The position numbers and the translations under genes were made by a program. Under the pieces are notes generated by a model. The model ran no database searches and was not told where the DNA came from. It was given only the letters and a program-made list of their open reading frames with translations. A stretch of DNA of 58,476 bases, counting the filler, from Trichosphaerium sp. ATCC 40318 (lineage: Eukaryota > Protista > Tubulinea), in assembly GCA_038496445.1 (NCBI GenBank). It is 2 parts of 2 records of this genome, joined end to end, with 100 filler letters (N's around TTAATTAATTAA, not from the genome) between each part and the next. Parts side by side here need not be neighbours in the genome. Positions count along the whole stretch, not along the records: positions 27,717 to 58,476 come from JALMLS010000357.1; 1 more part is not named here. One strand, given 5' to 3'. Below are positions 27,717-58,476 of the stretch, piece by piece. The stretch's first letter is position 1. Each line of letters begins with the position of its first letter.

Positions 27717-27940
27717 TTATAAGGTCCGATACAGAGGTGAGTTCTGCCGTTAGGGAAAAGCTCTATATAAACTTTGAATAGGCGCTGCATAGCAGCCTAT
27801 GATCGTTCTTTTTGTTGTTGCTCTAATTATGTTATACCTGATTTTATAAGGATTGTTTCAACTGAGTAAGTCATTGAACACTGTTAAAAATGCTATAGCA
27901 TACATATGAACACTTATACAGTGTTTAATTCAGGATACTG

Positions 27941-29486: not shown

Positions 29487-32400
29487 GGTAACTACAATAA
29501 TATAAACCATACGAGTCAATATTATTCAGCAACTAGTAGTGTTAAAAAGATTCTGTGTCCTTCAAACCACCAAGCTAAAACCTACATTGCTTGCAACAAA
29601 GTGTTGCATTTATGGATTTTGCTACCTGCAAACACCTACAAATACTGGACTGATCCTCCTAAAACAACAAGGCCACCAACAGTAGAACTTACAATAGCTT
29701 CTCAACTAGATACACCAAATGCTCTCATCTCAAGATCTCAAAGAAGCGGATTTGAGATACAAGACATTGATAGTGGCTCTTCTTAAATGTACGACCTTTG
29801 TTCGTTTTTTAAATCTATCTTTAGCTTGGTTAGATGCTTATTTAGTACAATAGCTTTTAGTTCCTTGACAGGCCTTGGAGTATGGTGCTGTGCAAAATGA
29901 GATAATATGTTGACTACATATTTTGTAGGTTCTTATCACTGTGGCATAGTACGAGCAACTGAAATTGAGGTTTTGCAAACACTTTTTTGTTTAGTCAAAT
30001 TTGTACGACATTTTATATATCCGCCTTGGCTGTTAACAAGGATAGTGCAGTCAGCCATCTACAAGATTTTTGTAGTAGCCTCACTAGGCCGGAAATAACA
30101 AAACGGCACTTGTTGGAGGTTTTGCACAAGCTTTGAAAACCGTAAAGGCGTATTGAATTCAGACACATAAAGATATTCCAACGTGGAACAGTATTGTAGA
30201 CATTTGAAACGATTAGTACAGCCACCACGTTTTTTACCGAGTTCTTACCAAAATGGCGTTTATCACAAGATTCACTCTTTTTGAACGTGTCAGTGAATTT
30301 TGAGCATACAGACTAATTCATGTTTGTTGTTTACATTGCATACAATTACCGCATCTAGTGGCAACTTCGTAGCATCATTTAGAGCTTTGAATTCTTTGCT
30401 GGTAATTTAGTGATTTTACTTATGTAGTAATTTTACAAGCAACATTGTGCCTGATAATAATATGTGCTACCACTTATTTTAACATAACCTCAAGTTACAC
30501 ACACAAAAGCGAGGTTCATATACAAACCTTATTACTGGTAAGTATTCTGTATCTGTGTAAACAAAAGCTCCATCAATAGCATCAATTGTAACGTTCTGAC
30601 AACTTGTAACATTAATTATTCTGACACCAGTTACTGCCCTAACACCATCATCTGTAATATTACACTTTGCAAGGTTAATTGTATGAACACCAACCAATGC
30701 TTTGACGCCTTCATCTGTAACTTTTGTCTTGCAAAGGTTAATTGTATGAACACCAGCTAGTGCTTTAACACCTTTATCTGTAATGTGTATACAGTATGAT
30801 AAATCAATAGTATGAACACCTGCCAATGCTGTAATACTCTTATCAGAGACATAGTCACAACGCCTTAAATGGATTTCATGAACGCCAGCCAGCGCTTTAA
30901 CACCATCACCTCTAATATCATTATAGCTTAAACTAACAGTATGAGCACCAGCCAATGCTTTAACACCTTTGTTTGTAACATCACAACTGTCCAAATTAAT
31001 TATATGTACACCTGCTAATGCCTTAGCACCTTTATCTGTAACATGTTCACACCCTTCCAAAAAAATGGTATGAACTCCTGCCAAATGTATGATGCCATCA
31101 TCTGTAATATGTACACATTCTGTTAAATCAATAGAATGTACTCCAGCCAACGCTTTCACGCCATCATCTGTTATGTGTTTACATTCTGATAAATTGATTG
31201 TATGCACACCAGCCAATGCTTTAATACCTTCATCTGTGACATGTATACATTCTGATAAATTAATTGTATGAACACCAGCCAATGCTTTCACGCCATCATC
31301 TGAAATTTGTATACATTCTGATAAATCAATAGTATGAACACCTGCCAATGCTCTAACACCTTCGTTGGTAATATCCTCAATTCCTGATAAACGAATTGTA
31401 TGGACACCTGCCAAAGCTTTAAGAACAGCATCATTAGCACCCCATAAATTAATAGTATGAACACCAGCTAAGCAGCTAATATTATCATCAGATACAAGTG
31501 TATGACAAAGATCGATGGTGTGAACGCCAGATAAAGCTCTAATACTGTCATCTATTTTTTCAAGTCCCCACAAATTTATCTCATGAACACCAGCCAGTGC
31601 TTTAATACCTTCATCTGTAAGGACTGTGTTACAAGATATATCAATTGTATGGACACCCTAGCGATGTTCCAAACGAATAGAATACCGAATCTATCGCCAG
31701 AACGTAAAAAGTTGGAAATAGTCGAATATATTCCGATTCGGTTTTCAGAGAAGAGCGACTGTGAAACTGAAAGTTGTTGGCTTTTTTTTTAATCACCAAG
31801 TGCTTTTTGTTCATCCAAACCACTCTCATACGTTTTAAAATGCATATTTCTATACATAGAGTGGTTGAAAGCCCTATATTGAGTGAGTTTAAGATATCTA
31901 CGTTTTAGCGGTAAAACTAAGTCACAGTAAGCCTAACCGACACTTTTGTTGTGTGAAATTGTGCCAGTGGTGACGTTTTTTTGACAATTCGAGCCAATCT
32001 TGAGCCCACCACGTGATCTATTTTTTTGCTGTCTCAAAACCACTTTTTAGTACTTTCCACACGTAGAAATAGCCATCACTTGAGGTAAAACATATCTCTG
32101 TCGACTGAATAGACTGTGATCTACTAATAAACTCTAAAATGCTTTAATAAATACTGCGAGAGTATGTTAAACAACATGTTGGAGTTAGAGCTTGTAACAA
32201 GCTGATTTTGTGTCTTTTTATTTTCTGTAATTGTATTTAGAAAACTCACATTTTTTCACTCATCAACTTCCTCGAACTGCTTCATAGTCACACTATCCAT
32301 ATTTTATGACTGCTGAATATACACAAGGGCAGCTGATAGGTATGTACAAGTCATTAGGTTACTTAGAATCAAAAGTGTTGAAAAATACCGTGTAATACAC

Positions 32401-32675
32401 ATTCTTTGCATCTCATAGTGTTTGAGAGTAGTTTTGAAACACGTGATACATTTTGTAGAGTTTACACTTCAAATCAAGTAAAAGTAGTCACAAACCGTGT
32501 TATACGCACGTTTATTGCAGTTTGTGGTCACTTTGGCTGATAACAAAATCGTTTATCCTTTTTAGTATCACATGTATCAAAACTACTCGGAACTGTGTTG
32601 AACACGTGTTTATTAAACGTTGTGGCCATTTTTAGCCAATTTTAAACTGCTTGTACTGTACTTACTGTTACTTAG

Positions 32676-33760
32676 CTAATTTACCCAAGTGGGATGCTCA
32701 TAGTTGTCCGTGGGATGCTGTTTACATTGCGCTGTGCTCAGTTAATGAAGTTTGTGTATGTAAACATCAAATTATGTGCATTTGTTTTGCTTAGCACAAA
32801 GTTAGGTATTTCCACAACACCCAACTTTGTTAACGGACAACAATACTTCACAAAGTCGAAACAAACTCATAGCTCTCTTTGAAGAACACTGCTACTACAC
32901 TAATCCAAAACAGCAGACATATCTAGCAAAGCAGTTTAGTAAGCAGCGTAATGGGCAGTATGCTTTTGAATGCAGTGTAACAGAAGTACACAGATACGCT
33001 AGAAAAATGTGTACAGCATTTCATTTTATTGAGTGTTACGAAAATAAATGCTCATGTCAAGGTACAACACAATTACTTTTATGGTATTCACACATTTAAA
33101 GACAGTTTCAAATCTCTGGAAAGGCTGTTCATTGATTATGGAGATTTAGAAGAGCGAATATCTACTTGGTTGAATCAAAGATTACAGTCAAACCATTGTA
33201 CAGAATGTACTTCTGGTGGAATAAAAACTGCTATGGTAATTCTATGTCATTATCTACAACTTATCATTGATAGAGCATCACAATACCAGCGCTGATAACA
33301 GTGTGTCCTTCACCTACAGTGGTATCCAACTTTTTTGGGTTGCCTCAACAATTAATTCTACACGGAAGGTACATACAAACACAAGGCTGTGTGTTAATGA
33401 AATTAGAGTGTGGAAAGCAACGTATTTATTAATGTGGCAAAAGAACCCAAAGCACTACACTACATATGTGAATGTAAATGGTATTTGGTGGTTCATTGAC
33501 TGTTACCAACCAGAAAAATCTTGTCGCTCCAATCCTTGTAAGCCATTTTTCTACTACCTATGATTAACGCTTGAAAGGGGATAGCTCTGCATCACATGGC
33601 ACCAACCCTGATTTTTGGCGTGTTTGTGAGGTTGTTTATAAAGGAGAACCACATCAAGTATTTAACACAAAGCCTTACAAACCACCAACTCCGCCCTCCA
33701 TCTATGAAAACTACAGCTCAAACAGTGTCAGGTATTGTGAATTACATTTTGTGGCAAATA
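32676..33760 (+). CDS. USP/C19-like (papain-fold) cysteine protease domain inside the piggyBac-like element, multi-exon; start codon not identified
   Basis: Cys-box-like LPKWDAHSCPWDAVYIAL (Cys codon 32705-32707), CSC and CTEC Zn-ribbon-like motifs, IPALITV, LPQQLILHGRVWKATYLL, His-box-like KHYTTYVNVNGIWWFID. Confidence 0.6.
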
Positions 33761-34179
33761 GTTAACCTAAGTAGTGACGTTGTGTGTATTGAAGATAGTA
33801 GTGATGAATTTAGCCCATATGATGTACATCCAATTGATTCGAATGAATTCAGTGACGAAGATTCATGTAACATTTTAATGGTATCTAATTGTAAGCTACC
33901 TTCCGATAGAATATTGGCAAAGGATGACATTTTGGGTAAAACGGTAACAATACTTAAAGTAACAGACAAACGAACTATCACCAAGAAAGAAAAGAAAGTA
34001 GGACAGCGAAAGTGGGTTGTAGAAGTAGAAATTAGTGTTGATGGTGAAAACAAACATTGTAGGCTATGGGACTGTGATGCAAAAACATTACAAGGATACA
34101 AGACAGCAATTGCACACTGGAAAACACAAAAGTACATTACTGACGGGGTACTTTTCTACCAGTTAATGAAGGCACTAAC

Positions 34180-36580
34180 TTGTTTAGAACTGGGAGCCTG
34201 GTATAAATGCACCACATTTAAAGCATACATCTGCAGATAATGTGCTTGGTATTGATGAAGGAAAACAGTTTGCAATATGGAACCACAAAAAACCACCAAC
34301 AGTTCAAGATGCAATAACAACATGGCTTTCACCTTTGTTTAACATGGTATTAGCGGACTCATCAATAGGTTTGACAGTTTGACAGCTTATGTAGTTTATT
34401 GCAATCAACTCACTCTTTTGTAGGGTTTAAAACGTTGGGTGCTGATTCCAAAAACATCTACAACAAGCTGAAAAAACAAGATATTTTGAAGCACAATTAC
34501 AAAAAGCAACTTGAAGCGTTGAAACTGTATCCAGGTAAAGCCAATACCCTGTATTACATTAAATGGTTTATAGATATTAAAAACACATCTTGGTATCAAA
34601 ATACAGTACCCAAGACAAAACAGCGGCTTGATAAAATAACCCAAAGCTGTGCTTCTGTTTCATATTCTACCTTGCTTTCTAAAATTGATATTCCGGGATA
34701 CATCAAAGCCAAAAAACAAAAAAATCACCATAAATGGACATGTGCCGGTAGTTGGTCAATAGATCTAGTTAGGTACTATTTTGGAGCGCTATTAGGAATG
34801 AAACTAGCGCCACACCATAAGCTACCAAATTATTGGAAAAAGTTCTCATTATATGGAAATGAAGGTACAAATGAGTTCATTTTGTACATTATTTAGTTTG
34901 GTAGCCATTAAAAATAGTTGTACATTGGAGCAATGGGAAGAAATCACCTCTCAGATAGATTACCATCCCTTAAAAGTTCAACGGTATTGTAATTTGGTTT
35001 GATATCTTCTGTGTATTTACAAAAATATTACAGGTTGCTGAATAGTGTTATACAACAGTCGTTTTTACCTGGAAGTATTGGTTGCCTAGATGAATCAGTA
35101 CTACCAGGAGCAAGTATGTCAACACTATCAAGGCATCATTTAAATGGCCATAGAGGTGTGGTTTAGATGTTATTGTTCACGCAAACCTGTAAAGGAAGGA
35201 TTTTGGGTTTTTGAATTCTGTTTTAAAGTACGTTACCTCATAAAGCCTTTTTTAATGATTTAAAAAGAATGGTAAAGATGTTTGGCCATGGATGCTTGAA
35301 GTACGATTTGGAGGAAGCACTTTGCCTCCGTCACACATGGCTCACTTTATTGCTACTACTATATTGAAGAAGTATCCCAACAATAAAATTACCATAGCAA
35401 CTGATTCATACTACACTACACCAGCTATGGCAAAGCAAGCATCTAACAACTTTAAATTTGTTGGAGTTATGAATTCGACTAAAGCAGCGGACATGATTTC
35501 TCATCTGAAAAAAGTACAAAAATTCCATGTCCACATCTAATTGATTGCTAGTTGCTACCCAACAAAAAGGTTGGAACACATGTGTGGGTATATGACGCCA
35601 ACACATTGGAACAAGATTCTCCAGTCTGTGCTGGTATATTCAAAGATGTTAAATCTCATGTCTCTTATCTATCAAACATTGGAGATCCTACTAAATCTGT
35701 TTCTGTGACAGAAACTATCAAGTCAAAACAACAGGTGATACATAAGCCTGAACCCGTGAAGCTGTATTCAGAATTGAAAAATGCTTGTGATGTATTTAAT
35801 AGATTGTACGCATAAGTTGTAGTTATTAATACTGATTTTATACACAGTGTATTGAAGTACAGAAGGATTCATAATACCAAAAACACTCGGTGGACCACAG
35901 CATTGTTGACAGCCTACTTGTAACATATTTTGTTAACACCACAGTTAATGTTGTTTAGTGATTTGTTTATGGCATCCTCTTTTTGTTGGTACACAATGCT
36001 CAACAAACATAGCACAATAACATATGCAAAGTACATGGAAATGGTCGCAACTTCTTTAATGGAATCAAACCACAAACCCATATGTATTCGGCTGAGAAAA
36101 CCCACAACTGCAAAAACTCCTAAACCTCAAGCTTACAATGATAGATGTTTACATACTCGGTCTAAAATGAAACCAATTTCAGACATCCAAAGCAATCAAA
36201 TGAAATCACGCACAAGTGATCACATTCATCAAGCCAAACAATCAAACAAAAGAAAATTAGAAAAACAAAGTGGACAGGCAAAAAAACGTCAGCGAGTAGC
36301 AAAAACTCATAGTTTGCACTCAATTACAAAGTCTCGCTTTTCTGACAAGCTATTAAACTCACAAGTTGCCAAATGCAAGGTTTGCAATCAACGAAAAATA
36401 AGAAGGTACTATGCCGGCTATTTATTAACAGTATTCACCAAGATTAGGTATTGCAAAGGATGTATGATACAGCGTAAACTTGTTTGTGTGAAAAAAACTG
36501 TCTATTCTTTAAGAGTTCCAACGTTTTACTGTGTTGATTGCTTTCTAAACTACCACATGAACACTTCTTTCAACTACTGA
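34180..36580 (+). CDS. piggyBac-family (DDD) transposase with C-terminal cysteine-rich domain, multi-exon; probably continuous with the upstream protease exons
   Basis: YFGALLGMKL..LPNYW; PGSIGCLDES (Asp 35089); FRCYCSRKPVKEGFWVF; IATDSYYT; FVGVM; KPEPVKLYSELKNACDVFNRL; CKVC...YCKGC...YCVDCFLNYH. Confidence 0.88.
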
Positions 36581-38041
36581 ATGGTACCTCTCTCTTTGGT
36601 CATTTGGGATTGACATGGAATATCATATATCTTTTGGCTCTCACTGGGCTAGCTCCAGGCAGTGACCCAGATTATGGAGAAGACGACTTAGTATCAGGTA
36701 AGAAAAAGAGATTTAAAGAGAAAGCTAACAAGGCGTTCAAGGTTGACATTGATACCATATTGGCAATGAAATAGCATTCTGCCTTGTAGTATCTCTTAGA
36801 ACATGCAGTGGATATTGCCTCCTACCAATGCAACAGTGGCACTGACACTGAATGCCATAACTGGTACAAGACGCTTTTACACCTCACTCTATGATATCTA
36901 TCTAATGGTTGTCTTTTGCAATGCGAAATAATTGGTATTTTTAGGTAATTAACTAACAAAGACGGACTGAAAATGATGGCATTTTTTATTTTTTGTTTGT
37001 TTTACAAGATATTGATACCCTTTGTACATGGGTAACAATTTTGGAAAGTGTTTGGACACAGCAGCAATGTCCGAAAATAAACTTCCTCTTTCTGTGAACA
37101 CAAAAAAAGGCTGCGGATGCTGCTCAAATTTGGGCAAAAAATTGTCCAAAATTCCGCCCGCTTGTACTCCTTGTGTGTAGTCGCTTGTGTGGGGGTAGTG
37201 GGTATATGTAAGAAATAACCAGCTACCTATTTGTGTTGTTATTCAGTCGATAGAGATATTTTAACACAATTTTGTAGTTTTATCTATTCACTTGCTCTAT
37301 TAAAAAAAAGTCTCAGACGTGTTCGGATGTAAAAAAATGGGTTCAGGACAGCAATAAGGATGTAATTTGTGCCGTTTTATCTCACCACAAAAAAAGCGAG
37401 AAGAATATATTCGAATAAACCAAGAAAATTTGGTTCAAATACGAATTTTGCAATCTATCCGTTTGGAACATCGCTAGGACACCCGCTAACAATGAAATAC
37501 CTTTATCTGTTACATTATCACAACCCATTATATGAATACTGTGAGCATTAGCCAATTCTTTAATACCTTTGTCAGTAACACCATCACAAGACCTTATTTT
37601 AAGTGTATGAACACCACCTCTTCCAAGGGCTATAATGCAATCATCTCTAACTTTGCACATTCCCACATTAATTGTATGAACACCAGCCAATGCTTTAACA
37701 CCTTCACTTGTGATATCGCAACAACCATATAAATTAATGCTCTTAACACCAGCTAACCACTTGAGTCCTTTATCTGTGACATGGTTACAATAGCTTAAAT
37801 CAATTGTGTGAACACCAGATAATGCTTTGAGAACATCGTCTGTAATACATGGACAATAACTCAAATCAATTTCATGAACGCCTGATAGTGATTTAATACC
37901 TTTTGCTGTAACACGTGTGCAAAAGCTTAAGCCAATCGTGTGAACGCCAATTAATGATTTAATACCTCGATCTGTAACCTTTGTTCCATTTAATATGATT
38001 TTATGAACTCCAGAAAGTTGATTAAGATGGTCATCAGTCAG

Positions 38042-38775
38042 TAGAGGTGGCAAATACCGGTCCGATACCGGTCCGGTTTCAATATATCGGTTTTCGGTCC
38101 GTAACCGGTCCGTGATTTAGAGCAAGAGCAGTATTCATTCAGTGAATAACAATGTAATTGGCTTCTTTTTGAACCACCACTCACTTTATTTTGAATAAAA
38201 GTAGCCTGAAACGCCTTAAAATTGAGAGTTCTACACATAGAGTGGTTGAAAGCCCTCAATCAGCCCGTTTTAACAAAATTAAGTTTAGCGGTAAAACAAG
38301 CTACTTTTTTTGAGTCAAAATGTGCCTGTGGTGACGTTATTTTGACATTTGGACAAAATCACGTGATGTTACATACTTTCATACACTTTCACCCAAACAT
38401 CTTTTTATCACTTTGTGCGCGTAGAGCAACTTATCAAGTGCATTGCTTACGCGAAATAATAGTATCTAAACTATTTTAGGTATGAAAAAAAAAAAGTGGT
38501 GATATTCAAACCTGCCACAAAAAGTGTACAGCCACCTTATGTGCATGCACACAGTGAGTAGGTCAATGGATGGAGGCATCTGAGATTTTGTGATAGAGGA
38601 CCGTTTGGACCGATAAAAATCCAAGGGAGTACCCTTTGACAAAAATTCCCTTTTCGGCTATTTTTCCGATTTTCCAAGGGTACCCCCTTTGACAGCGGAC
38701 CGTTTGGACCGTTTACGGACCGGTCTTTGCGTTTCGGTCCGGAACCGGTTCGGACCGGTATTTCTGCCATCTCTA
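38042..38775. mobile_element. hAT-type MITE B (734 bp)
   Basis: Imperfect TIR TAGAG(G/A)TGGCA..AATACCGGTCCG; 8-bp TSD TCAGTCAG at 38034-38041 and 38776-38783; many subterminal GGACCG/CGGTCC repeats; empty site at 28650. Confidence 0.93.
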
Positions 38776-41434
38776 TCAGTCAGTAAGTGACAAAACCTAA
38801 AGTCAATACTATTGACTGTCCTAAAGTCTGTAAAGTCTACTTTTCTAATATCACGTGTTTTGAGAGCGTACGCTCCTTGTAAATACCTCAAGTGTTTTTG
38901 TTTTAGAGGGAAGTTGAGGACTATTTGAGTTGTCTTGATGAGATGTGGTGATTGTTTGTAAAGTTGTTTCAGTTCTTTTTTCGTTTTAACCAGAGTAGTT
39001 GCCCTGTTGAGTTCATATCCCAAGTACTGTGTTGCTACATTTGATAATATTTTACACGTACATACAACTGAATGCATAGATAACGTTGAAACAAATTGTA
39101 GAACGATAATTATGATTTCTACAGGAATCTCATCAAAGAATGCACTGTTTGAGTTCATTTTACTTTCTAATACTAATAATAGGAGAGGCGAGTAGCCACG
39201 TGTTATTTGTAGTTTTACAAGTGTTCACTTAACGTTTATACGATTTTTGGAAAAATCACGTTTTTTTGGTCTTGCCACAAGTGGCAACCTTGTGTAAGAT
39301 CTTTAGAGAGCTTTAATTAGTACAATAGCTTGTCAAGTTCTAAAAGAGGCCTTTGGAGTATAGTACTGTGTGAAATGAGATAAAATGGTGGGTACTATGT
39401 ACTTTGTAGATTACTTTCATAATAGTTTCAGGGCAGGTGGGATTGAGGAAGGGAGAATGGGAGTATGAAAGGCGAAAGGATTTGACATTACGCACGTCCA
39501 AGTAAATAAGCATCTAACCAAGCTAAAGATAGATTTAAAAAACGAACCGGGTCGTACATTTAAGAAGAGCCACTCGCAATGTCTTGTATCTCAAATCCGC
39601 TTCTTTGAGATCCCGCTGACTCTTGAGATGAGAGTATTCGGTGTATCTAGTTGAGAAGCTATTGTAAGTTCTACTATTGGCGGCCTTGTTGTTTTGGGAG
39701 GATCAGTCCAGTATTTGTAGGTGTTGCAAGACACGTTATTTTGATTTGAAACGTTGTCCTATTACAAGGTGCATTTTTTGTTTGTCTAATATGAATGTTT
39801 GACTAAGAGTTTGTTCTTCTAGGATATAAACCACGAGAGGGCAATGGGTATATTCTCAATGATGGATATTACAAATGTGCAGATTGAGGATAAGATGAGT
39901 TCTGATAACCAGTATGTATGGTCATTTACACAAAAACGGGAAGACGGTGACAGATTGATGTTCTTCTTCGTTTCGACTGAGCATGCAGCACGTGATTTTT
40001 TTTCTTACATTATTCTTTTTTTTTTTCCTCAATGACAAGACTTACGTTACATTAATCAATGACAAGTGAGTGTCACATTGAAGCTAACACTTGTTCTTTG
40101 TAGAGAAAGGAGTGGGTGGAACACATCATTTTGGCAACAGAACTATGTCGTCTTGTGTAGTAAATTATGCACTTTAAAAAAGCTACATGTGGTTTAAGCC
40201 CGTGATAATTTAATGTGCATTCAGCTCCAGAAACGAAGAGCAAGGTAAATAAAAAATGCAAGGTTGGGGTAGTACAGTCGAAATCACTTTTACATAATAA
40301 TACACTTTAAACGCTACATGCGAGTTTGAGAACACCGCCATAAAGCTTATGACCACTGTACACGGAAAGTCTTTCTTTTGCAAGTGAATTAACATGATGA
40401 AGTGTTACCATGGTTTAAAGTACATTTATTATGTACCTCTTTGTCACTAGTTTAGTGCCTATAGCTCTAATAGCTCTTTTTTTATTGTAGGCTTTGTATA
40501 ACGTATGACTCAAATCTAAGGTCCTGGTACTGTATTACCATTTAACACAACTCTTGCAAAGAAAACCTCCTTCAGATTTGTTATGACAGCCCCACAAGGG
40601 GAGCGAACAATAGGTATACTATACAAAATAGTACACTTTTGTGTAGTTCACTGTACTATGCAGCAATCACAGTTACTTTCAAGGTATTCAAGCCACATCG
40701 TGTCAATGTTTTTAACTCTTTATCCTCGTTACATTGATTACTCATACATTGCATCAACAAGAATCAAAGTTTTTCCCAAGTGGAAGCTATCAAGTAACAT
40801 TACGTTACCATCAGTAATACGTACAATTGATAGAGGTAGTAGTCATAACTGATGGTACAACAACGTAATCTGCATGCTACTAATCAACAATTCATCAAGC
40901 GCAACCTCACACATACTCTTTAGGCTATCATTGGATAGAAGCTCTGTATTTACCAAAGAGTCACAAGGAAAAGAAACGCATCAAGCTCAACTTGTTTGGT
41001 ATAATAGTCACCACTGCTTTGCTTCTAAATATAAGTTCACGGATGACGAAAGTTGCAAGGCAATTTTTTTCTTGTTTTGATAGAAGTCACGTGATTATAA
41101 CACGATCCTTAATCAACAATCTGACTATGAAGTGTAGCTAAATATTGTACAATAAAGTGGGTGTTTGAGCCATGTCGTTTACCATTTACGCACTTGATGG
41201 CAAATGTTGTGCTGTACATTTCTTACGCTATCATTAAGTATATTTGTAGACTATGAAGGTCCCTTGCACCAGCCACATCAATTGCTAGCCTGGACCTAAT
41301 TTACATATATGACAAAATTCGGTTACAAGCTCAAACCAAGAGAGGGTGACTTACGGCCAATTAAGCTGAACACAATTATTAAGCGTCAAACTTAACTCTT
41401 ACGCCACAGTGCTATTGCGTAAACAATAAAACAA

Positions 41435-42368
41435 ATGGAACAAAGGCTAAACACATCAATTATACACCAATACGACAATAATAGCATCAATAGTACGTTC
41501 GATCTTACAGCACTACCAGTTGAAGTTATCGTTCATATTATGAACTGCGGCAAGTTTACCCTCCGTTCAGCCCAAACGTGCCATTTCTTGCATGATATTA
41601 TCCATAAACACGTCGGCTATGGCAAAATATGCGTCAAAACTCAAAACGAAATATCTATGCTTTCCGGAAGCCCTCTGCTTAAAAATACAGCAATTCTTTT
41701 CAGGACAACCTTCAAAGACAATGTTACAGACAGTCAACTACACTTACTTCAAGGTGTGAGAACTATCGACTTGCGTCGCTGTAAACAAATAACGTATGAT
41801 GGTGTAAAGGCGTTAGCTGGTGTTCATACAATTGATCTTGGCTACAATCAACTAATAACAGATGAGGGTTCAAGCGTTATGTGGAGTACACACGATTGAT
41901 TTATCATTCACTAATATTACAAACAAGTGTCTGAAAGCTTTAAAAGGAGCTCATACTATCAACCTGGGGTATTGTGAAGGAATAACAGATGATGGTGTCA
42001 AAGAGTTGGCAGGTGTAAAAGATATTGATTTATCAGGTACTAAGATTACAGATGAGTGTTTGCAGGCATTATTTGGTGCAGATAGGGTTATATTGCGACG
42101 CACAAACATCACCGACAAAGGTATGAAGTTATTGAAAGGAGTAAGGATAATTGACATATCATTTTGTGAATATGTAACAGATGAAGGTGTTTCTAACCTT
42201 GATGGTGTTTCAATGCTATTTGTAATGTACTGTCCAAATATTAATGGTGAAGGTTTACTTGGACTTAAGAGTGAGACGTCTGTGTTCTGTAAAGTTGATA
42301 AATTAAACCCAACAGTGGTTGAGACACTTGAAAGTAAGGGTGTAGATGTCTTTGAAATTTATGGATAA
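41435..42368 (+). pseudogene. Intronless F-box/LRR gene with a frameshift near 41866; paralogue of 51958-52944
   Basis: DLTALPVEVIVHIM F-box. GATGAGGGTTCAAG versus GATGAAGGTGTTCAAG in the paralogue is a 2-nt deletion; one LRR unit fewer. Confidence 0.85.
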
Positions 42369-51957: not shown

Positions 51958-52944
51958 TTAGTACATATTTACGCCCTTACTTTCAAGTGCAGTAACAACT
52001 GTCGTCTTTAATCTACTAGCAGTGCTAATCACTTTGGTCAAATTATTAAGCCCAAGCAAACCATCACCATTAATATTTGGACAGGACATCATACATAGCA
52101 TTGAAACATCATCAAGGTTAGAAACACCTTCATCTGTTACATATTTACAAAATGATATGTCAACAATCCTTATTCCTTTCAATAACTTCATACCTTCGTT
52201 GGTGATGTTTGTACGTTGCAATATAACCCTATTTGCACCACATAATGCCTGTAAACATTCATCTGTAATCTTAGTACCTGATAAATCAATATCTTTTACA
52301 CCTGCCAACTCTTTGACACCATCATCTGTTATTCCTTTACAATACCCCAGGTTGATAGTATGAGCTCCTTTTAAAGCTTTCAGACACTTGCTTGTAATAT
52401 TAGTGAATGATAAATCAATTGTGTGTACTCCATATAACGCTTGAACACCTTCATCTGTTATTAGTTTATTGCAACTAAGACCAATTTTATGAACACCAGC
52501 AAATAGCTTTACACATTTATCTGTGACTCCTGTTAATGCCAAATTAATCTCTTGTACACCAACCAACGCCTTTACACCATCATACGTTATTTGTTTACAG
52601 CGACGCAAGTTGATAGTTCTCACACCTTGAAGTAAGTGTAGTTGACTGTCTGTAACATTGTCTTTGAAGGTTGTCCTGAAAAGAATTGCTGTATTTTTAA
52701 GCAGAGGGCTTCCGAAAAGCATAGTTATTTCGTTTTGAGTTTTGACGCATATTTTGCCATAGCCGACGTGTTTATGGATAATATCATGCAAGAAATGGCA
52801 CGTTTGGGCTGAACGGAGGGTAAACTTGCCGCAGTTCATAATATGAACGATAACCTCTACTGGTAGTGCTGTAAGATCGAATATACTACGATTGATGTCA
52901 TTATTGTCGTATTGTATACTTGACGTTTCTAGCCTTTGTTCCAT
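51958..52944 (-). CDS. Intact intronless F-box/LRR protein, 328 aa
   Basis: F-box DLTALPVEVIVHIM plus about nine 21-22-aa LRRs (GVHTIDLSFTNITSKCLKALK type). Confidence 0.9.
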   Translation of the reverse strand: MEQRLETSSIQYDNNDINRSIFDLTALPVEVIVHIMNCGKFTLRSAQTCHFLHDIIHKHVGYGKICVKTQNEITMLFGSPLLKNTAILFRTTFKDNVTDSQLHLLQGVRTINLRRCKQITYDGVKALVGVQEINLALTGVTDKCVKLFAGVHKIGLSCNKLITDEGVQALYGVHTIDLSFTNITSKCLKALKGAHTINLGYCKGITDDGVKELAGVKDIDLSGTKITDECLQALCGANRVILQRTNITNEGMKLLKGIRIVDISFCKYVTDEGVSNLDDVSMLCMMSCPNINGDGLLGLNNLTKVISTASRLKTTVVTALESKGVNMY

Positions 52945-53381
52945 TTGGTTTATTGTTGGTTTGCGTTAGTAACAGCGTTTGACTAGCTTAAAAGCCAGAA
53001 GTTTAACTTAATAGCCACTTAAGTCGCCATTTAAGATCTTGGCAAGTTCCAAAGTAGGTCTTTTGGTTGTAAGTACATAGCTGATTATGGTATCAGAGCA
53101 CTCGTTCATTCGCGTATGGTACTTCAGTTACACAATCGCTTGGCTACAAAAAAAAACAACCAAGATCCTACCAGTATATCACTACATAGTGCGATAATAA
53201 AATTAAAGCTATTAACAGCTACAACTGGCAAGAGATTCAAGTGGAATAAAACCAACTTTTAAATAATTTTTTTACGTTTTATTTTTATAACCGCAAAATG
53301 TGAAGGTAGGAGTATGAGTCCTCAAAAAGGGAAAATATCGAGAACCCAATCTAGTTTTTTTTTTCGCTTGTTGAAGTTTTT

Positions 53382-56300
53382 TTACAAATTACTTGGTGTC
53401 CCTTCCGACTCTTCAAGTAGTTTCTCCTTTTCAGTAGTATGATTCATACTTGTTTCACTATTAGAGTCATCAGATGCTGTTTGAGTTAGATTAAGTTCTC
53501 CCAGTTCAATAAGAGGCTTATTCCTTCCAACACCAAGTCTGTCCGCCTCTTGAAGAATTTGCCAATCAGCAGGGAAGTACTGGCGTTGTACACTAAAAAA
53601 AAAAACATCAGCACACACAACCAAAATACATTGGCACAAAACAAATACCAACCAAAAAAAAATAAATCACGTGTTCATACTTGCACCAAAAAAACAAGAA
53701 AAAGAAAACAGAAAAAAATAAGAAAAAGTTGAACTTCATCAACCACGTACTACATGAAACATAGGTCAATAACAGCCGTTGCTGTAGGTACCCATACAAT
53801 ATAGAAATAGAAAGACCCAGCTGTGAAAGATCTCAAAGTTACCATAAGCAAGCTAGGAACCAGATACGTAAAGTCATTCTCAACCCATAACATAATAACA
53901 TAAATGACAATACTCAAAGCCAAACCAAGCCACACAGGCCATGTCCAGTGCCTTGAAACAAGTAAGAAACTTTAAGAAAAACACGAGGTGTAGTACCGAG
54001 TAATCAGGAACATTTTAGTGTGAACCATAGCAAGACCAGCTGTGATGACATAAACACCAACAACATATAAGCCATTATCAGCTTGTCCGTTCTCTTGTAA
54101 TGAACCAATACCACCAAAGTATATTAGGAAACTACCAAAAAGAACCCATGAATGTACTATAATAGTAATGATCCAAACAGAGAAGGTACGCCAATTAAGA
54201 ATACCTATTGATGAAGTTTAAAAAAAAACCAAGAAAGGCGGGGCTTGTTCTTTCAAAGAACCAGAAAAAAAAATTACAAAATGAGTGGTACCTGCGCGAT
54301 ACTCTCTTGAAGCTTCTGGGTACTTATATATAACCTTTGGTTTAATATCTTGTTCAAATAGAGCATATAGGAAAGGAGAAAGAGACGTGAGAATAACATT
54401 ATACCCAGCAATAATCCAATCTTCATAAAGTGTCTAAAACACAAAAACTTAGTTTAAAAAACGCTTATACCTTCCTTTGACAAGTTAAAGATGATCATAC
54501 CTGTCCGGAGAAGCCACTGAACCAAGCAAAGTAGAGCTGAGCAAGGAAGACTGATAGATTCTTATAAAAACTATACTGGATAAGTCCAGCGTTTCTAAGT
54601 AAACTGTATCGTCCATGTTTCATTACTAGAGGTACTAGATGTCTTTTTCGTAAAGGACGAAACAACATTTAATTAAGCAAAGAATAAAGGGACAAAAAAC
54701 CCGCTTAAAAAGATACTTGAATTCGCGTATAGCGTAGTCAGAAGCACGTGCAGATTGTGTTCCTTCTTTACCAAAGATACCAACACCAATATGGGCTTGC
54801 TAGAGAAAAATACAGTTAGATAAACGCCAGCAGAATAGTTTGTTTTAGAAACTTTTTTTTCTTTCAAAAAATAACGGAGATCGTACTTGAATCATAGCAA
54901 CATCGTTTGCACCATCGCCAACAGCAAGGGTAATAGTTCCCTTAGCTCCTTTACGAATCATTTTAACTACATTCGCTTTTTGCTTAGGCGAAGCACGACA
55001 ACAAATAACAGACTTTGAGCGAAGTCCCAAGTCCCTAAATTCGTCCCTGTACTTAGCCAATGCAAATACCATTGCGTCTCCATCAATAATAAGAGCAATC
55101 TCTCCAAGTTTCTATAGATGCAATAATAAGAACATGACAATAATACTTTTTTGAAATATCACGTACTTTAGCTTGCTTGAGACCTTCTTTGAGTTTGTCT
55201 TGCACTACAAAAAAAGTTAATTTCGAAAAACACTCCAATGAAGGAAGTCCGTACCATCAGACTCTTTTTTGCACTTTGTTACTCTGCAAAGAGCCAATCC
55301 TGAAGGTAGGAGCTTGCATGATGTTCCAATATTAATAGCAGTCTCTTCTTTATCACCTGTAATCATCCAGACCTTCACACCAGCCTACAACAAAATACTT
55401 AGCCAAAAAACAACTTCCGAAATCCTCTTAAAACAACAAGATACTGAAGGCTCTTTCGTTTCGTACCTCTAAAAAGAAGTGTAATGTCTCTGCAACCTTA
55501 TCCTGTAATTTATCTTCAATAGCAGTAGCACCAACAAGCTCAAAGTCCTTCTCTAGAAGTTTCCAAGCCTGTTTTTTGGCTTTTTCACGCCCTTCAAGCA
55601 AAAGAGAAGCGTCCTTATATTGCTTAATATAAGCCTGATACTCTGCCTCGGTCCAACTCTTTTGACAAAGCAATAGCGTACGCAGGCCCTAAACAATACT
55701 AGTTAGATAACAATCCATACGTGAGTACAAGAAATGAGAAAACAGCGTACATTACTGCTGAACATATCAAGGTGATTTTGTGTAACTTGTACAAGCTTGC
55801 CGTCTTTCTGTTTAAGTAATTTCATCATTACAGAGTCTGCTCCCTTTGAATAAACCATAATCTTACCATCAGGATGACGTATAACAACAGTCATACGTGC
55901 ACGTTTCGATGAGAATTTAGCGAGATTCAAAAGCTCAAATTCTTGGTCTACACCTCCAATCGAAATCGTAAGTGTATTGTTGTTACGACCTTTAAAGACA
56001 TATCCGTTAATCTCTGATGCTTCCACAAGAGCAATTTCATCAGGAGATTCACCAGAATACTCAACAGTCTTCTCTACAGGAGAGTGTTAATCCAACGAGT
56101 GTTAATCCAAAAATTGAGAACAAAAAAAAAGGACTTGCCTTGAGTTGCTTCATCAGTGTACTCACTAAGCACAACAGAGTGATTAAGAACAAGGTTCAAG
56201 ATAAAATCGTTGACATCTTTATGTCCCCTCTTTTTATCCTCTACAATGTTACCTAACTGCCCCTTCAATCCTTTTGTGTATACAACACCCTTAATGGAGC

Positions 56301-58476
56301 ATTTATCAAACTTCATCTCATTTCTCGTCAATGTCCCTGTTTTATCGCTAAAAATATACTGCGTCTAAACAGAAGATCATAGTTAGCTCCTGTTCTTATC
56401 ATAGTACAAATAAGATTCTACTTATCAAGGACTCACCCGTATCAACTCGTCATTAAGGTTTGAGTTCTTTGGCGTACAGCCAAGACCCTCTGTAGTCATT
56501 TCAGTGTCCCATACCATCCAAATAGCTTGGAACAATTTTGCTAGCTCTACTGTGACCTTTTGAATAAACATAAGCAGGTGACTAACACTACAAGCTATTC
56601 ACATAGAGTGACACGTACAAAAAGAGAAATCGGAATGAAGTAAGAAAAGATGGCGAAATAACGAAGAAAGACTAATATTCCTTCAATAGCAGGATCTTCA
56701 CCTCCAGCTAAATGAGGAGAATCTCTAACTTCTCTTCCCTAGAATAAAACGGTTAAAGGATATACAAACAGAACAAATAACTCACTTGAAACAAACCACC
56801 AGCAATAGAGACAATAAGCAACATGAGAAGTTTAAAGATAAATACAGCAAGAGCGATCCTAAAACCAAATTGTTAAAGAAAGCGTAAGAAAAAATCAAGA
56901 ACCCTCACTTGTCAAGGAAACGGTCTACTTGAGACCTTTTAGAAGGTGGTGAAGATGCATTACACATAAGCTTTGTGTGCTTTCCAGGATACACCACAAT
57001 ACCATAAATCCAATCTGTGTTGCGCAAACTGCATCCCTAGAGCAAAAAAGTAAGCATAGTGAAATAAAAATGATATTGAATGACATCAATGTTACATACA
57101 CGCATGAGTAGGTTAGATGCATCAAGAGATATATCATGTTGTTCATCATTTGATCCAACAGTAATATTGGTAGTCGCTTTGAACTTACTGAGGAGTGCCC
57201 TCGGCGCTTCAGCTTTTAGAGTTCCCTTCAACAATATTAGACCTTATTTATCTAAAAACAAGCTAGAGAAGAAATGAAAAAAAAAAATCACGTGCCTTAA
57301 TGTTGCATAGCTCATTAACATCAAACTCAGCTGTAACACTAATACTTTGCCTGGATTTTAAGGCTGTTTCACTAAAGAATGAGAGAGTTAAGACGAATTG
57401 TATTGCACAATAATACAATTACATTCAAAAAAAATCAAAATAAAAACTTGCCCATCTAAACTAGACGTTTCTATGTAACAGCGACCACCAGTAGATGATG
57501 AAGATATACATACAAGATCAGCGGGGAAAGCTCCTTTTCTTGAAACCTGTAGGCCTTGTTAACCAAAAAAAACAAGCAAAGAAACACAATAAAAGAAAAA
57601 TTTTTTGAGTAATCAGGCGCCAACTAAGGCCTATAAGCGTTCCCCAATTTGTTACAAATACATAAGCAATGTGAAAATTTTTAAGCGTTAGACTATACAA
57701 TGTATATCCAATCAAAAAAAAAGTATTTCAAGGAATCAAAAAAGAAAAGCAGACCGTCTTCCGGACTTACGGACTTACTCTTATAATATCACCCGTGTGT
57801 ATATCTTTACTCTTTTTAACAACTATAGCCTTACTAACTGGATCATAAACATCAAACTTTCTGTTATTCTCCTTCTCATCTTCTCTCCAACGTTTCTTTT
57901 CGAAAACAAAATAAGCAAATGAAACATAAAAAAAAAAGAAAATACTCGTACATAGTCTTCGTATCCTTCTTTAACCATAGCAACACCCACTACAAATACA
58001 AGAGGGAATATTGAACTGAATGGATTCAATGAAGAGGCCGCAGGAATAAGAGTAATAATAGCAACCAACAAGAAATAAATATTCGCAACTCTAAAAAGAA
58101 AGTCAATAATACTCACTAATCAGCCAACACAATTATTAATGAAGTGCTTATTCTTTTTCCCAAACAACAGGAAACAACAATAAAAAATATTTCACAAAAA
58201 AAAGATGACACGTGAGACACCAAACGAAAAGACTTTACAACATTCAAAAAAGAAATAAAAATCAACCCAAGGTTTTTTTTATGTTTGTTCGCATGACGTA
58301 CCGTCTGAACTGTTCATAAAGTTGTCTTGGAAAAAATGTAAGTGCTGTGTACTTTGTTGTTGTATAAATATTCTTCTTGAACTTCTAAACAGGGTGTCAC
58401 CACAATTAGAAAGAGAACTAAAAATAAAAAAACTCCAAAATAAAATAAAAAATAAATAAATAAAAAATCATACTCA
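53382..58476 (-). CDS. P4-type ATPase (phospholipid flippase), multi-exon, 5' end near or beyond the window edge
   Basis: [91 protein letters not shown]. Confidence 0.95.

Follow-up and report, generated by a model that had tools for sequence, protein, structure and literature searches.

A recently inserted transposon of Trichosphaerium sp. ATCC 40318 with a gene that may join a deubiquitinase-like domain to a piggyBac-like transposase

Bao et al. (2010) described several superfamilies of transposons with domains of the Ulp1 and OTU types, suggested that the ubiquitin pathway is involved in transposition, and listed a protein of Trichomonas vaginalis, XP_001314237.1, in which a transposase_11 domain (pfam01609) is combined with a Peptidase C19 domain (cd02657) (PMC2836005). 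A survey of piggyBac elements names TTAA as common to the superfamily and reports that N-terminal fusions are tolerated; it lists SCAN, CSB and other additions, with no protease mentioned (PMC5381638). Here, we describe a transposon in DNA of the tubulinean protist Trichosphaerium sp. ATCC 40318 (GenBank assembly GCA_038496445.1). The stretch analyzed, which we call the window, has 58,476 nucleotides and consists of two parts joined by 100 filler letters; the element lies in the second part (positions 27,717 to 58,476, record JALMLS010000357.1). On balance, we favor its interpretation as a cut-and-paste transposon with one gene, the product of which would comprise a USP-like (deubiquitinase-like) N-terminal domain, a linker, a piggyBac-like DDD core, and a Cys-rich end.

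The T. vaginalis protein is similar to this predicted product in that a DDE transposase of the IS4-like group is combined with a USP-type domain in a protist; its C19 domain, in contrast to the one considered here, was found by a curated profile, and the two proteins were compared by description only. The transposons with Ulp1 or OTU domains (Mutator, CACTA, Ginger1, and Helitrons) likewise carry a thiol protease specific for ubiquitin-like proteins, often fused to the transposase and with a function that is undemonstrated (PMC2836005). However, their proteases belong to other families (C48 and OTU) and the elements to other superfamilies, and in Ginger1 the protease is C-terminal. In CSB-PGBD3 and PGBD1, N-terminal exons are spliced onto a piggyBac-type transposase (PMC5381638), but there the exons are part of a host gene that lies beyond the element, and the transposase has been domesticated, whereas the exons described here lie within the terminal repeats of a recently moved element.

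With the piggyBac superfamily (Trichoplusia ni piggyBac and its relatives) the element shares the cut-and-paste mode with a 4-bp duplication, a repeat start that reads CCTAG here, additional asymmetrically placed inner repeats, and, judged by eye, a putative DDD triad with its first two Asp 78 residues apart and a putative Cys-rich C-terminal end. It differs in having ACAC instead of TTAA, at least 16 introns, a predicted product of about 1,080 aa in which about 230 aa at the N terminus form an additional domain, and Asn (N856) instead of a fourth Asp; furthermore, no significant Pfam or PDB match to piggyBac was obtained. According to the original prediction, a USP-type domain is not known as a standard component of piggyBac. 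Targeted literature searches revealed no report of a piggyBac-USP fusion, but a C19 domain on a DDE transposase does have a precedent (PMC2836005).

Based on its ends, the flanking duplication, and the restoration of a host reading frame, the mobile unit was delimited to 31657-37478 (5,822 bp), which replaces the boundaries 32096-37255 proposed originally. Its outer features are as follows:

31653..31656, no strand: left target-site duplication, ACAC, which recurs at 37479-37482
31657..31690, + strand: left terminal inverted repeat; its outermost 19 nt, CCTAGCGATGTTCCAAACG, equal the right end
31691..32088, + strand: left subterminal region, with weaker inverted similarity to 37289-37444
37445..37478, - strand: right terminal inverted repeat
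37479..37482, no strand: right copy of the ACAC duplication

The sequence CCTAGCGATGTTCCAAACG at 31657-31675 is found inverted at 37460-37478 with 19 of 19 positions identical; these are its only two matches in the window, and none was obtained in 100 shuffles. The terminal repeats are identical at 24 of 25 positions and can be extended to 34 nt at 85%, and weaker inverted similarity runs inward from the outer ends to about 31802 and 37289. Microhomology lets the duplication slide to ACACC or ACACCC (5 or 6 bp), and the ends are symmetric at 4 bp only. When 31657-37482 was removed in silico, the flanking minus-strand LRR open frames were joined into one uninterrupted frame of 582 codons, and the restored junction (...GISLLAGV followed by HTIDISC...) preserved the 22-residue LRR period. 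Since the host LRR frame is restored intact, the insertion is recent: a 5.8-kb element has been inserted recently within the coding region of an F-box/LRR gene of the host. The element is probably active. A tail-to-tail pair of LRR genes was considered as the source of the flanking inverted similarity and was rejected; the similarity is the element's own long terminal repeat, and both flanks belong to one LRR gene.

For the gene model, open stretches within the element were joined by hand at GT-AG sites. This gave a single frame of 1,074 codons on the + strand, running from 32676 to the stop at 36578-36580 through 17 exons and 16 introns. The intron lengths are, in order, 56, 40, 38, 38, 40, 40, 40, 55, 40, 50, 40, 40, 38, 42, 39, and 42 nt. 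Donors begin with GTA in 13 of the 16 introns and with GTAC in 8 of them, in comparison to 5% for GTAC among pseudo-introns, which were defined as GT..AG segments within exons that match the introns in size. A YTRAY motif is located near the 3' end, just upstream of AG, in 9 of 16 introns vs 21% of pseudo-introns, and GC content is 31% in introns vs 37% in exons. Judged by the GTA and GTAC donors, the YTRAY motif, the low GC content, and the GTACG donors of a P4-ATPase gene of the host, the introns of the model are real and are in the splice style of the host.

As a control, we determined the fewest GT-AG introns of 36-60 nt that are needed to read through the 3.9 kb at 32676-36577. On the real + strand 13 introns suffice, whereas traversal of the reverse complement is impossible; it is also impossible for 29 of 30 shuffles (the remaining one takes 36 introns) and for 8 of ten same-length host stretches (the other two need 28 and 33). 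For the 862 nt with the USP-like motifs, the real strand needs 3 introns, a number that none of 300 shuffles could match or undercut, and 172 of the shuffles could not be traversed at all. The reading-frame structure is far beyond chance, and both the transposon and the multi-exon gene within it are real. In this respect the original prediction is upheld: a multi-exon, intact gene lies in a transposon, and the protease-like exons are within the element and on the strand of the transposase.

The 5' end of the gene was modeled with one candidate exon:

32306..32339, + strand: candidate first exon with a start codon, 11 codons, and a GTATGT donor; its phase fits the exon at 32676 across a 336-nt intron

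An alternative start is the ATG at 32572 with a 79-nt intron. The product is predicted at about 1,080 aa and the gene at 17 or more exons. Within the putative first intron, there is a 24-nt inverted repeat (32426-32449 / 32565-32588; 92% complementary, arms 115 nt apart), which may represent a nested element of small size or a hairpin.

The N-terminal domain is encoded by five exons:

32676..32749, + strand: Cys-box-like exon with the motif HSCPWDAVYIAL; candidate nucleophile C10 at 32705-32707
32806..33061, + strand: exon that encodes GQYAFE (aa 74-79) and a first cluster of Cys residues (C101, C106, C108)
33102..33235, + strand: exon with HCTEC (C142, C145)
33274..33368, + strand: exon with IPALITV (158-164) and LPQQLILHGR (177-186)
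33407..33537, + strand: His-box-like exon with the motif KHYTTYVNVNGIWWFID; H202 at 33453-33455 and D217 at 33498-33500

The peptides on which the original prediction was built are all encoded on the + strand at 32.6-33.6 kb, where it had placed them; the Cys codon that it gave at 32705 occupies 32705-32707, and the exons can indeed be linked by short GT-AG introns (56, 40, 38, 38, 40, and 40 nt) that lead into the transposase frame. In the model, the motifs follow each other as C10, QYAFE, CxC, CxxC, IPxLxxV, H202-Y, and D217, which is the USP order with USP-like spacing, the spacing being compared without statistics. The distances are about 65 aa from Cys to QYAFE, about 13 aa from the second knuckle to the LP..L strand, 15 aa from His to Asp, and 192 aa from Cys to His. 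About 65 aa from Cys to the QQD-like box, about 13 aa from knuckle to LP..L, and 15 aa from His to Asp are typical of USPs, and the His boxes of many USPs are similar, over a short stretch, to the run HYTTYV...G.WWF.D. A USP-like fold of the N-terminal domain is, in our estimation, fairly probable. Its identity as a deubiquitinase is plausible, with a resemblance at the level of short motifs only.

A number of results weigh against a USP-type domain. The Pfam scan of each N-terminal exon (24-85 aa; open frame and trimmed) gave no UCH or peptidase match at E values up to 10, although such single-exon blanks are of limited weight because the exons are short and the HMMER filters drop matches above about E 0.1. 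PDB searches of the individual exons matched no USP chain, and the USP signatures PS00972 and PS00973 of PROSITE, in the form applied here, match nowhere in the 1,074-aa model. The Cys box (HSCPWDAV) has P and not an aromatic residue directly after Cys, and the His box reads KHY, not GHY, without an H.G....GHY stretch. Codon support, scored as leave-one-exon-out log-odds, is weak for the five exons, which together span 690 nt and reach about +8 bits; in exon 32806-33061 the true frame has a score of -6.2 bits, and for exon 33274-33368 an alternative frame reaches +4.3 vs -3.8 for the frame of the model. A single-sequence AlphaFold model of exon 32806-33060 had a pLDDT of 40. The claim of a Cys box, Zn ribbon, His box, and Asp in this order thus stands as far as the presence and order of the motifs are concerned, but no profile, structure, or homologue supports their assignment to USP.

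It is possible, if less probable, that this region is a zinc-binding module for DNA or protein, or a captured non-functional fragment of host origin, and that its USP likeness is a product of short-motif pattern matching. The composition of the N-terminal 230 aa (13 Cys and 8 His, with CxC and CxxC pairs) would suit such a module, and so would the blank exon-wise Pfam and PDB searches, the failure of the USP signatures, the weak codon support, and the absence of homologues in the searches made. However, no zinc-finger family of Pfam was matched there either, the frames are open far beyond chance, and five motifs stand in USP order with a spacing that is USP-like, including a run locally near USP His boxes. 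A C19 domain on a DDE transposase also has its precedent (PMC2836005). We retain the USP-like reading of the domain as the more probable one.

Inside the outer ends, a second repeat pair is present, which the original prediction had regarded as the terminal inverted repeats:

32089..32111, + strand: left arm of the inner inverted repeat, 23 nt at 91%
37240..37262, - strand: right arm of the inner inverted repeat, its outer edge overlapped by TTAA at 37261-37264

The existence of this pair near both ends was confirmed (23 nt, 91% complementarity), and its 20-nt core has no third occurrence in the window and did not occur in any of 100 shuffles. As ends of the element, however, these repeats were ruled out by the perfect outer pair at 31657 and 37478 with its duplication, so the statement that the terminal repeats are retained refers to the wrong pair. 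The left counterpart of the TTAA at 37261-37264 is GTAA at 32085-32088. Moth piggyBac carries subterminal (internal) repeats, and we favor a subterminal repeat over the ends of a nested element for the inner pair, because the outer ends and duplication are perfect and the inner ones are imperfect.

The nested arrangement is a less probable reading. It supposes that a piggyBac-like element (about 32089-37260, with TTAA-like flanks) lies inside a non-autonomous element of about 650 bp and that the composite was moved in trans, the CCTAG ends and the ACAC duplication belonging to another transposase. The TTAA and GTAA adjoining the inner repeats speak for it, as do 286 nt of the left arm that are absent from the right arm and are partly common to another transposon. 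On the other hand, the tips of the inner pair do not match exactly (a 2-nt indel and mismatches), and the two copies of its presumed duplication are not identical but differ in one base, whereas the outer ends, like their duplication, are perfect. Within the window the outer ends have no second copy, and the outer end begins with CCTAG, close to the CCCTAG with which the terminal repeat of moth piggyBac starts. The reading of a single element bounded by the outer repeats is the one followed below.

The middle region, the catalytic core, and the C-terminal end are encoded by the following exons:

33772..34147, + strand: exon with an acidic stretch and then a 90-aa segment without a Pfam family; its codon score of +51.9 is the strongest in the gene
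34188-34368, 34424-34864, and 34905-34983, + strand: three exons upstream of the catalytic core
35034-35113, 35154-35227, 35268-35513, and 35552-35805, + strand: four exons of the catalytic core
35848-35919, 35959-36405, and 36448-36580, + strand: last three exons, with a basic linker and a Cys-rich end; stop at 36578-36580

The segment at 33772-34147 may serve as a small module that binds chromatin or DNA. For 34426-34863, single-sequence AlphaFold gave an unusable model (pLDDT 40).

A putative DDD triad was recognized by eye as D659 (35089-35091, LDES), D737 (35403-35405, ATDSYY), and D853 (35789-35791, ACDVF), with a KP.K.G motif after the first Asp; the original prediction had regarded all three catalytic Asp as retained. 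The spacing of 78 between D659 and D737 equals that of the first two Asp in moth piggyBac. Three positions after the third catalytic Asp there is an Asn (N856, 35798-35800), at the position of the fourth conserved Asp in canonical piggyBac. The last intron (36406-36447; 42 nt) is in frame and stop-free, and its removal reveals, by eye, the C-terminal motif CKVC..CKGC..C..CVDCFLNYH; its retention adds 14 residues between the first two CxxC pairs, which is probably why the Cys-rich end is unrecognized when read unspliced. PF13842 was not detected in the exon-wise Pfam scans.

The profile evidence for the core is limited to sub-threshold matches. On 35552-35812, Pfam DDE_Tnp_1_7 (PF13843) reaches 14.3 bits at E 0.025, less than the 22.4 bits of its cut-off, and the match covers positions 261-318 of the 349 in the profile, where the exon of the third Asp is expected; DDE_Tnp_1_4 gives a weak match on 35259-35537 (E 0.03-0.045), and RNase_H gives another on the exon of the second Asp. 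Against a piggyBac assignment stand the score of the DDE_Tnp_1_7 match, the PDB searches of the transposase pieces, in which no piggyBac chain was matched, and the target-site duplication: the true ends are bordered by ACAC, and not by the TTAA that the original prediction implied. The designation "piggyBac-like" is therefore a qualified one: one Pfam match at E 0.025 and the by-eye motifs favor it, but the score lies under the cut-off and the target is not TTAA. We describe the core as piggyBac-like with membership not established, a weakly supported assignment.

Sola was reportedly defined by Bao and co-workers in 2009 by a DDD transposase and a 4-bp duplication without a preference for TTAA; the duplication here likewise has 4 bp and is not TTAA. 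That the enzyme belongs to another DDD superfamily with 4-bp non-TTAA duplications, such as Sola, and not to piggyBac, appears rather unlikely to us. The duplication itself is in its favor, and the triad was identified by eye only, with the sole piggyBac profile match below threshold. A blank Pfam result would also be expected, since Sola cores are without a Pfam model (PMC5751038). Nevertheless, the only transposase families that surfaced, DDE_Tnp_1_7 and DDE_Tnp_1_4, do so collinearly and, as weak matches, point to the piggyBac/IS4 group; and KP.K.G, the spacing of 78, and the CxxC..CxxC..CF..YH end, all judged by eye, fit piggyBac.

The connection between the protease-like exons and the transposase depends on one exon:

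33578..33731, + strand: linker exon, proline-rich, in frame 1 of the window and without an ATG of its own

Frames 1 and 2 are both open across 33578-33731, but the codon log-odds are +13.6 bits for frame 1 and -6.0 bits for frame 2. With no ATG in frame 1, translation can reach this frame only through the upstream exon. Both introns that flank the linker exon are of 40 nt, with GTAAGC and GTATTG donors and a TTAAC branch-like motif 10-14 nt before AG. There are more than 1,000 alternative GT-AG routes across the junction, so linkability alone is weak evidence, and the proposal of a fusion fares better on the linker exon, which appears to be coding in the ATG-less frame 1 and not in frame 2. 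We consider it likely that the protease-like exons are fused to the transposase in one gene.

By contrast, two genes in one element seem unlikely. In that arrangement, the protease-like protein would end as cargo at the TGA at 33561-33563, where its frame stops when left unspliced at 33538, and the transposase would be translated separately. The position of this in-frame stop 24 nt beyond the proposed donor, the ATG at 33596 that opens a 214-codon frame in frame 2, and the many alternative routes at the junction, which make linking prove little, are compatible with it. However, frame 2 scores as non-coding over 33578-33731 and frame 1 as coding without an ATG, and the junction introns belong to the standard 40-nt class with their donors and TTAAC motif. 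Assignment of the Cys and His boxes to the OTU type is less likely than assignment to USP. Positions +2 (aromatic) and +4 (Ala) relative to Cys, and HY after a hydrophobic strand, would also fit OTU, but the Cys-His distance of 192 aa and the zinc knuckles speak against it, and the W..F.D tail fits USP.

No relatives of the element were revealed in the collections searched. A word-indexed protein search with exon 32806-33060 gave no homologue, and scans of metagenomes with protein pieces (including exon 32806-33061), as well as genome and viral scans with protein pieces, gave no relative. An HMMER search of 1.84 billion representative proteins with 35924-36577 (218 codons, a query that included the retained 14-codon intron and 12 non-coding codons) yielded none at E 0.001. 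Scans with the terminal repeats found no other copy in genome and viral contigs, and exact look-ups of five open reading frames of the window in a collection of 15 billion proteins found none present. The absence of relatives from these collections counts against the favored interpretation, as do the competing candidates for the 5' end of the gene (ATG at 32306 or 32572).

In the favored interpretation, the element integrated into the F-box/LRR gene by a 4-bp staggered cut, with ACAC duplicated, and has one gene for a fused protein. The product would begin with a Cys/His-rich domain of about 230 aa resembling a minimal USP-type (clan CA) thiol protease, followed by a proline-rich and acidic linker and a segment without a recognized fold, then by an RNase-H-like DDD core nearest to piggyBac, and finally by a C-terminal Cys-rich module. 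The DDD core would cut at the CCTAG ends and join them to the target DNA. The Cys-rich domain of moth piggyBac binds its internal repeats, and by analogy the inner 23-nt repeats may be bound by the Cys-rich end of this protein. Should the N-terminal domain be a protease, it would be delivered in cis to the site of transposition, where it could strip ubiquitin or a ubiquitin-like tag from the transposase, chromatin, or repair factors. The more far-reaching proposal, an active transposon of the piggyBac clan that has been freed from TTAA and brings a built-in N-terminal USP-type deubiquitinase to the site of DNA breakage and rejoining, is tentative, and we hold it to be doubtful in this full form.

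The surrounding DNA (27717-58476) is eukaryotic, has a GC content of about 36%, and is rich in F-box/LRR genes. A second transposon is located in the same host gene: a non-autonomous 732-bp element at 38044-38775, whose terminal repeats begin with GAGGTGGCAAATACCGG. It is flanked by a perfect 10-bp duplication, TCAGTCAGTA (unit and duplications at 38034-38785), and its removal restores FCHLLTDDHLNQLSGV. The F-box/LRR gene, which occupies 39158 to 30479 of the minus strand, has therefore been split by two recent insertions. Between positions 31777-31992 of the 5.8-kb element and 38158-38353 inside the 732-bp element, the identity is 68.7% over 217 nt (E 3e-18), and the two elements share this segment despite different ends and duplication lengths.

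Searches with an LRR protein gave only matches with 28-35% identity. Paralogous F-box/LRR genes are present at 41435-42368 and 51958-52944; the latter is intact with 328 codons, and the former, in which a frame shift produces two overlapping frames, may be a pseudogene or may reflect a sequence error. A gene for a P4-type (flippase-like) ATPase is located at 53300-58476 on the minus strand; its introns of 62, 82, and 87 nt, which were placed by conserved P-type ATPase motifs, have GTACG donors in three of three cases, and its best relative, 60% identical, is on a 989-bp metagenome contig. tRNA and Rfam searches gave no match. The host lineage is barely sampled in databases.

In conclusion, thiol proteases that belong to the ubiquitin and SUMO systems recur in unrelated DNA transposons, those of the Ulp1 type in Mutator and CACTA and those of the OTU type in Helitron and Ginger1. 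The significance of the present locus, which is drawn from a single copy and from motif-level evidence, should be read at that strength. If the interpretation is true, a USP-type domain on a piggyBac-like enzyme would be another independent acquisition of this kind, and a piggyBac-like enzyme that integrates at non-TTAA sites would interest enzyme engineers. It would also offer a tractable system, as enzymes of the piggyBac type are easy to assay, in which the target of the protease may be sought among the transposase, chromatin, and repair factors.

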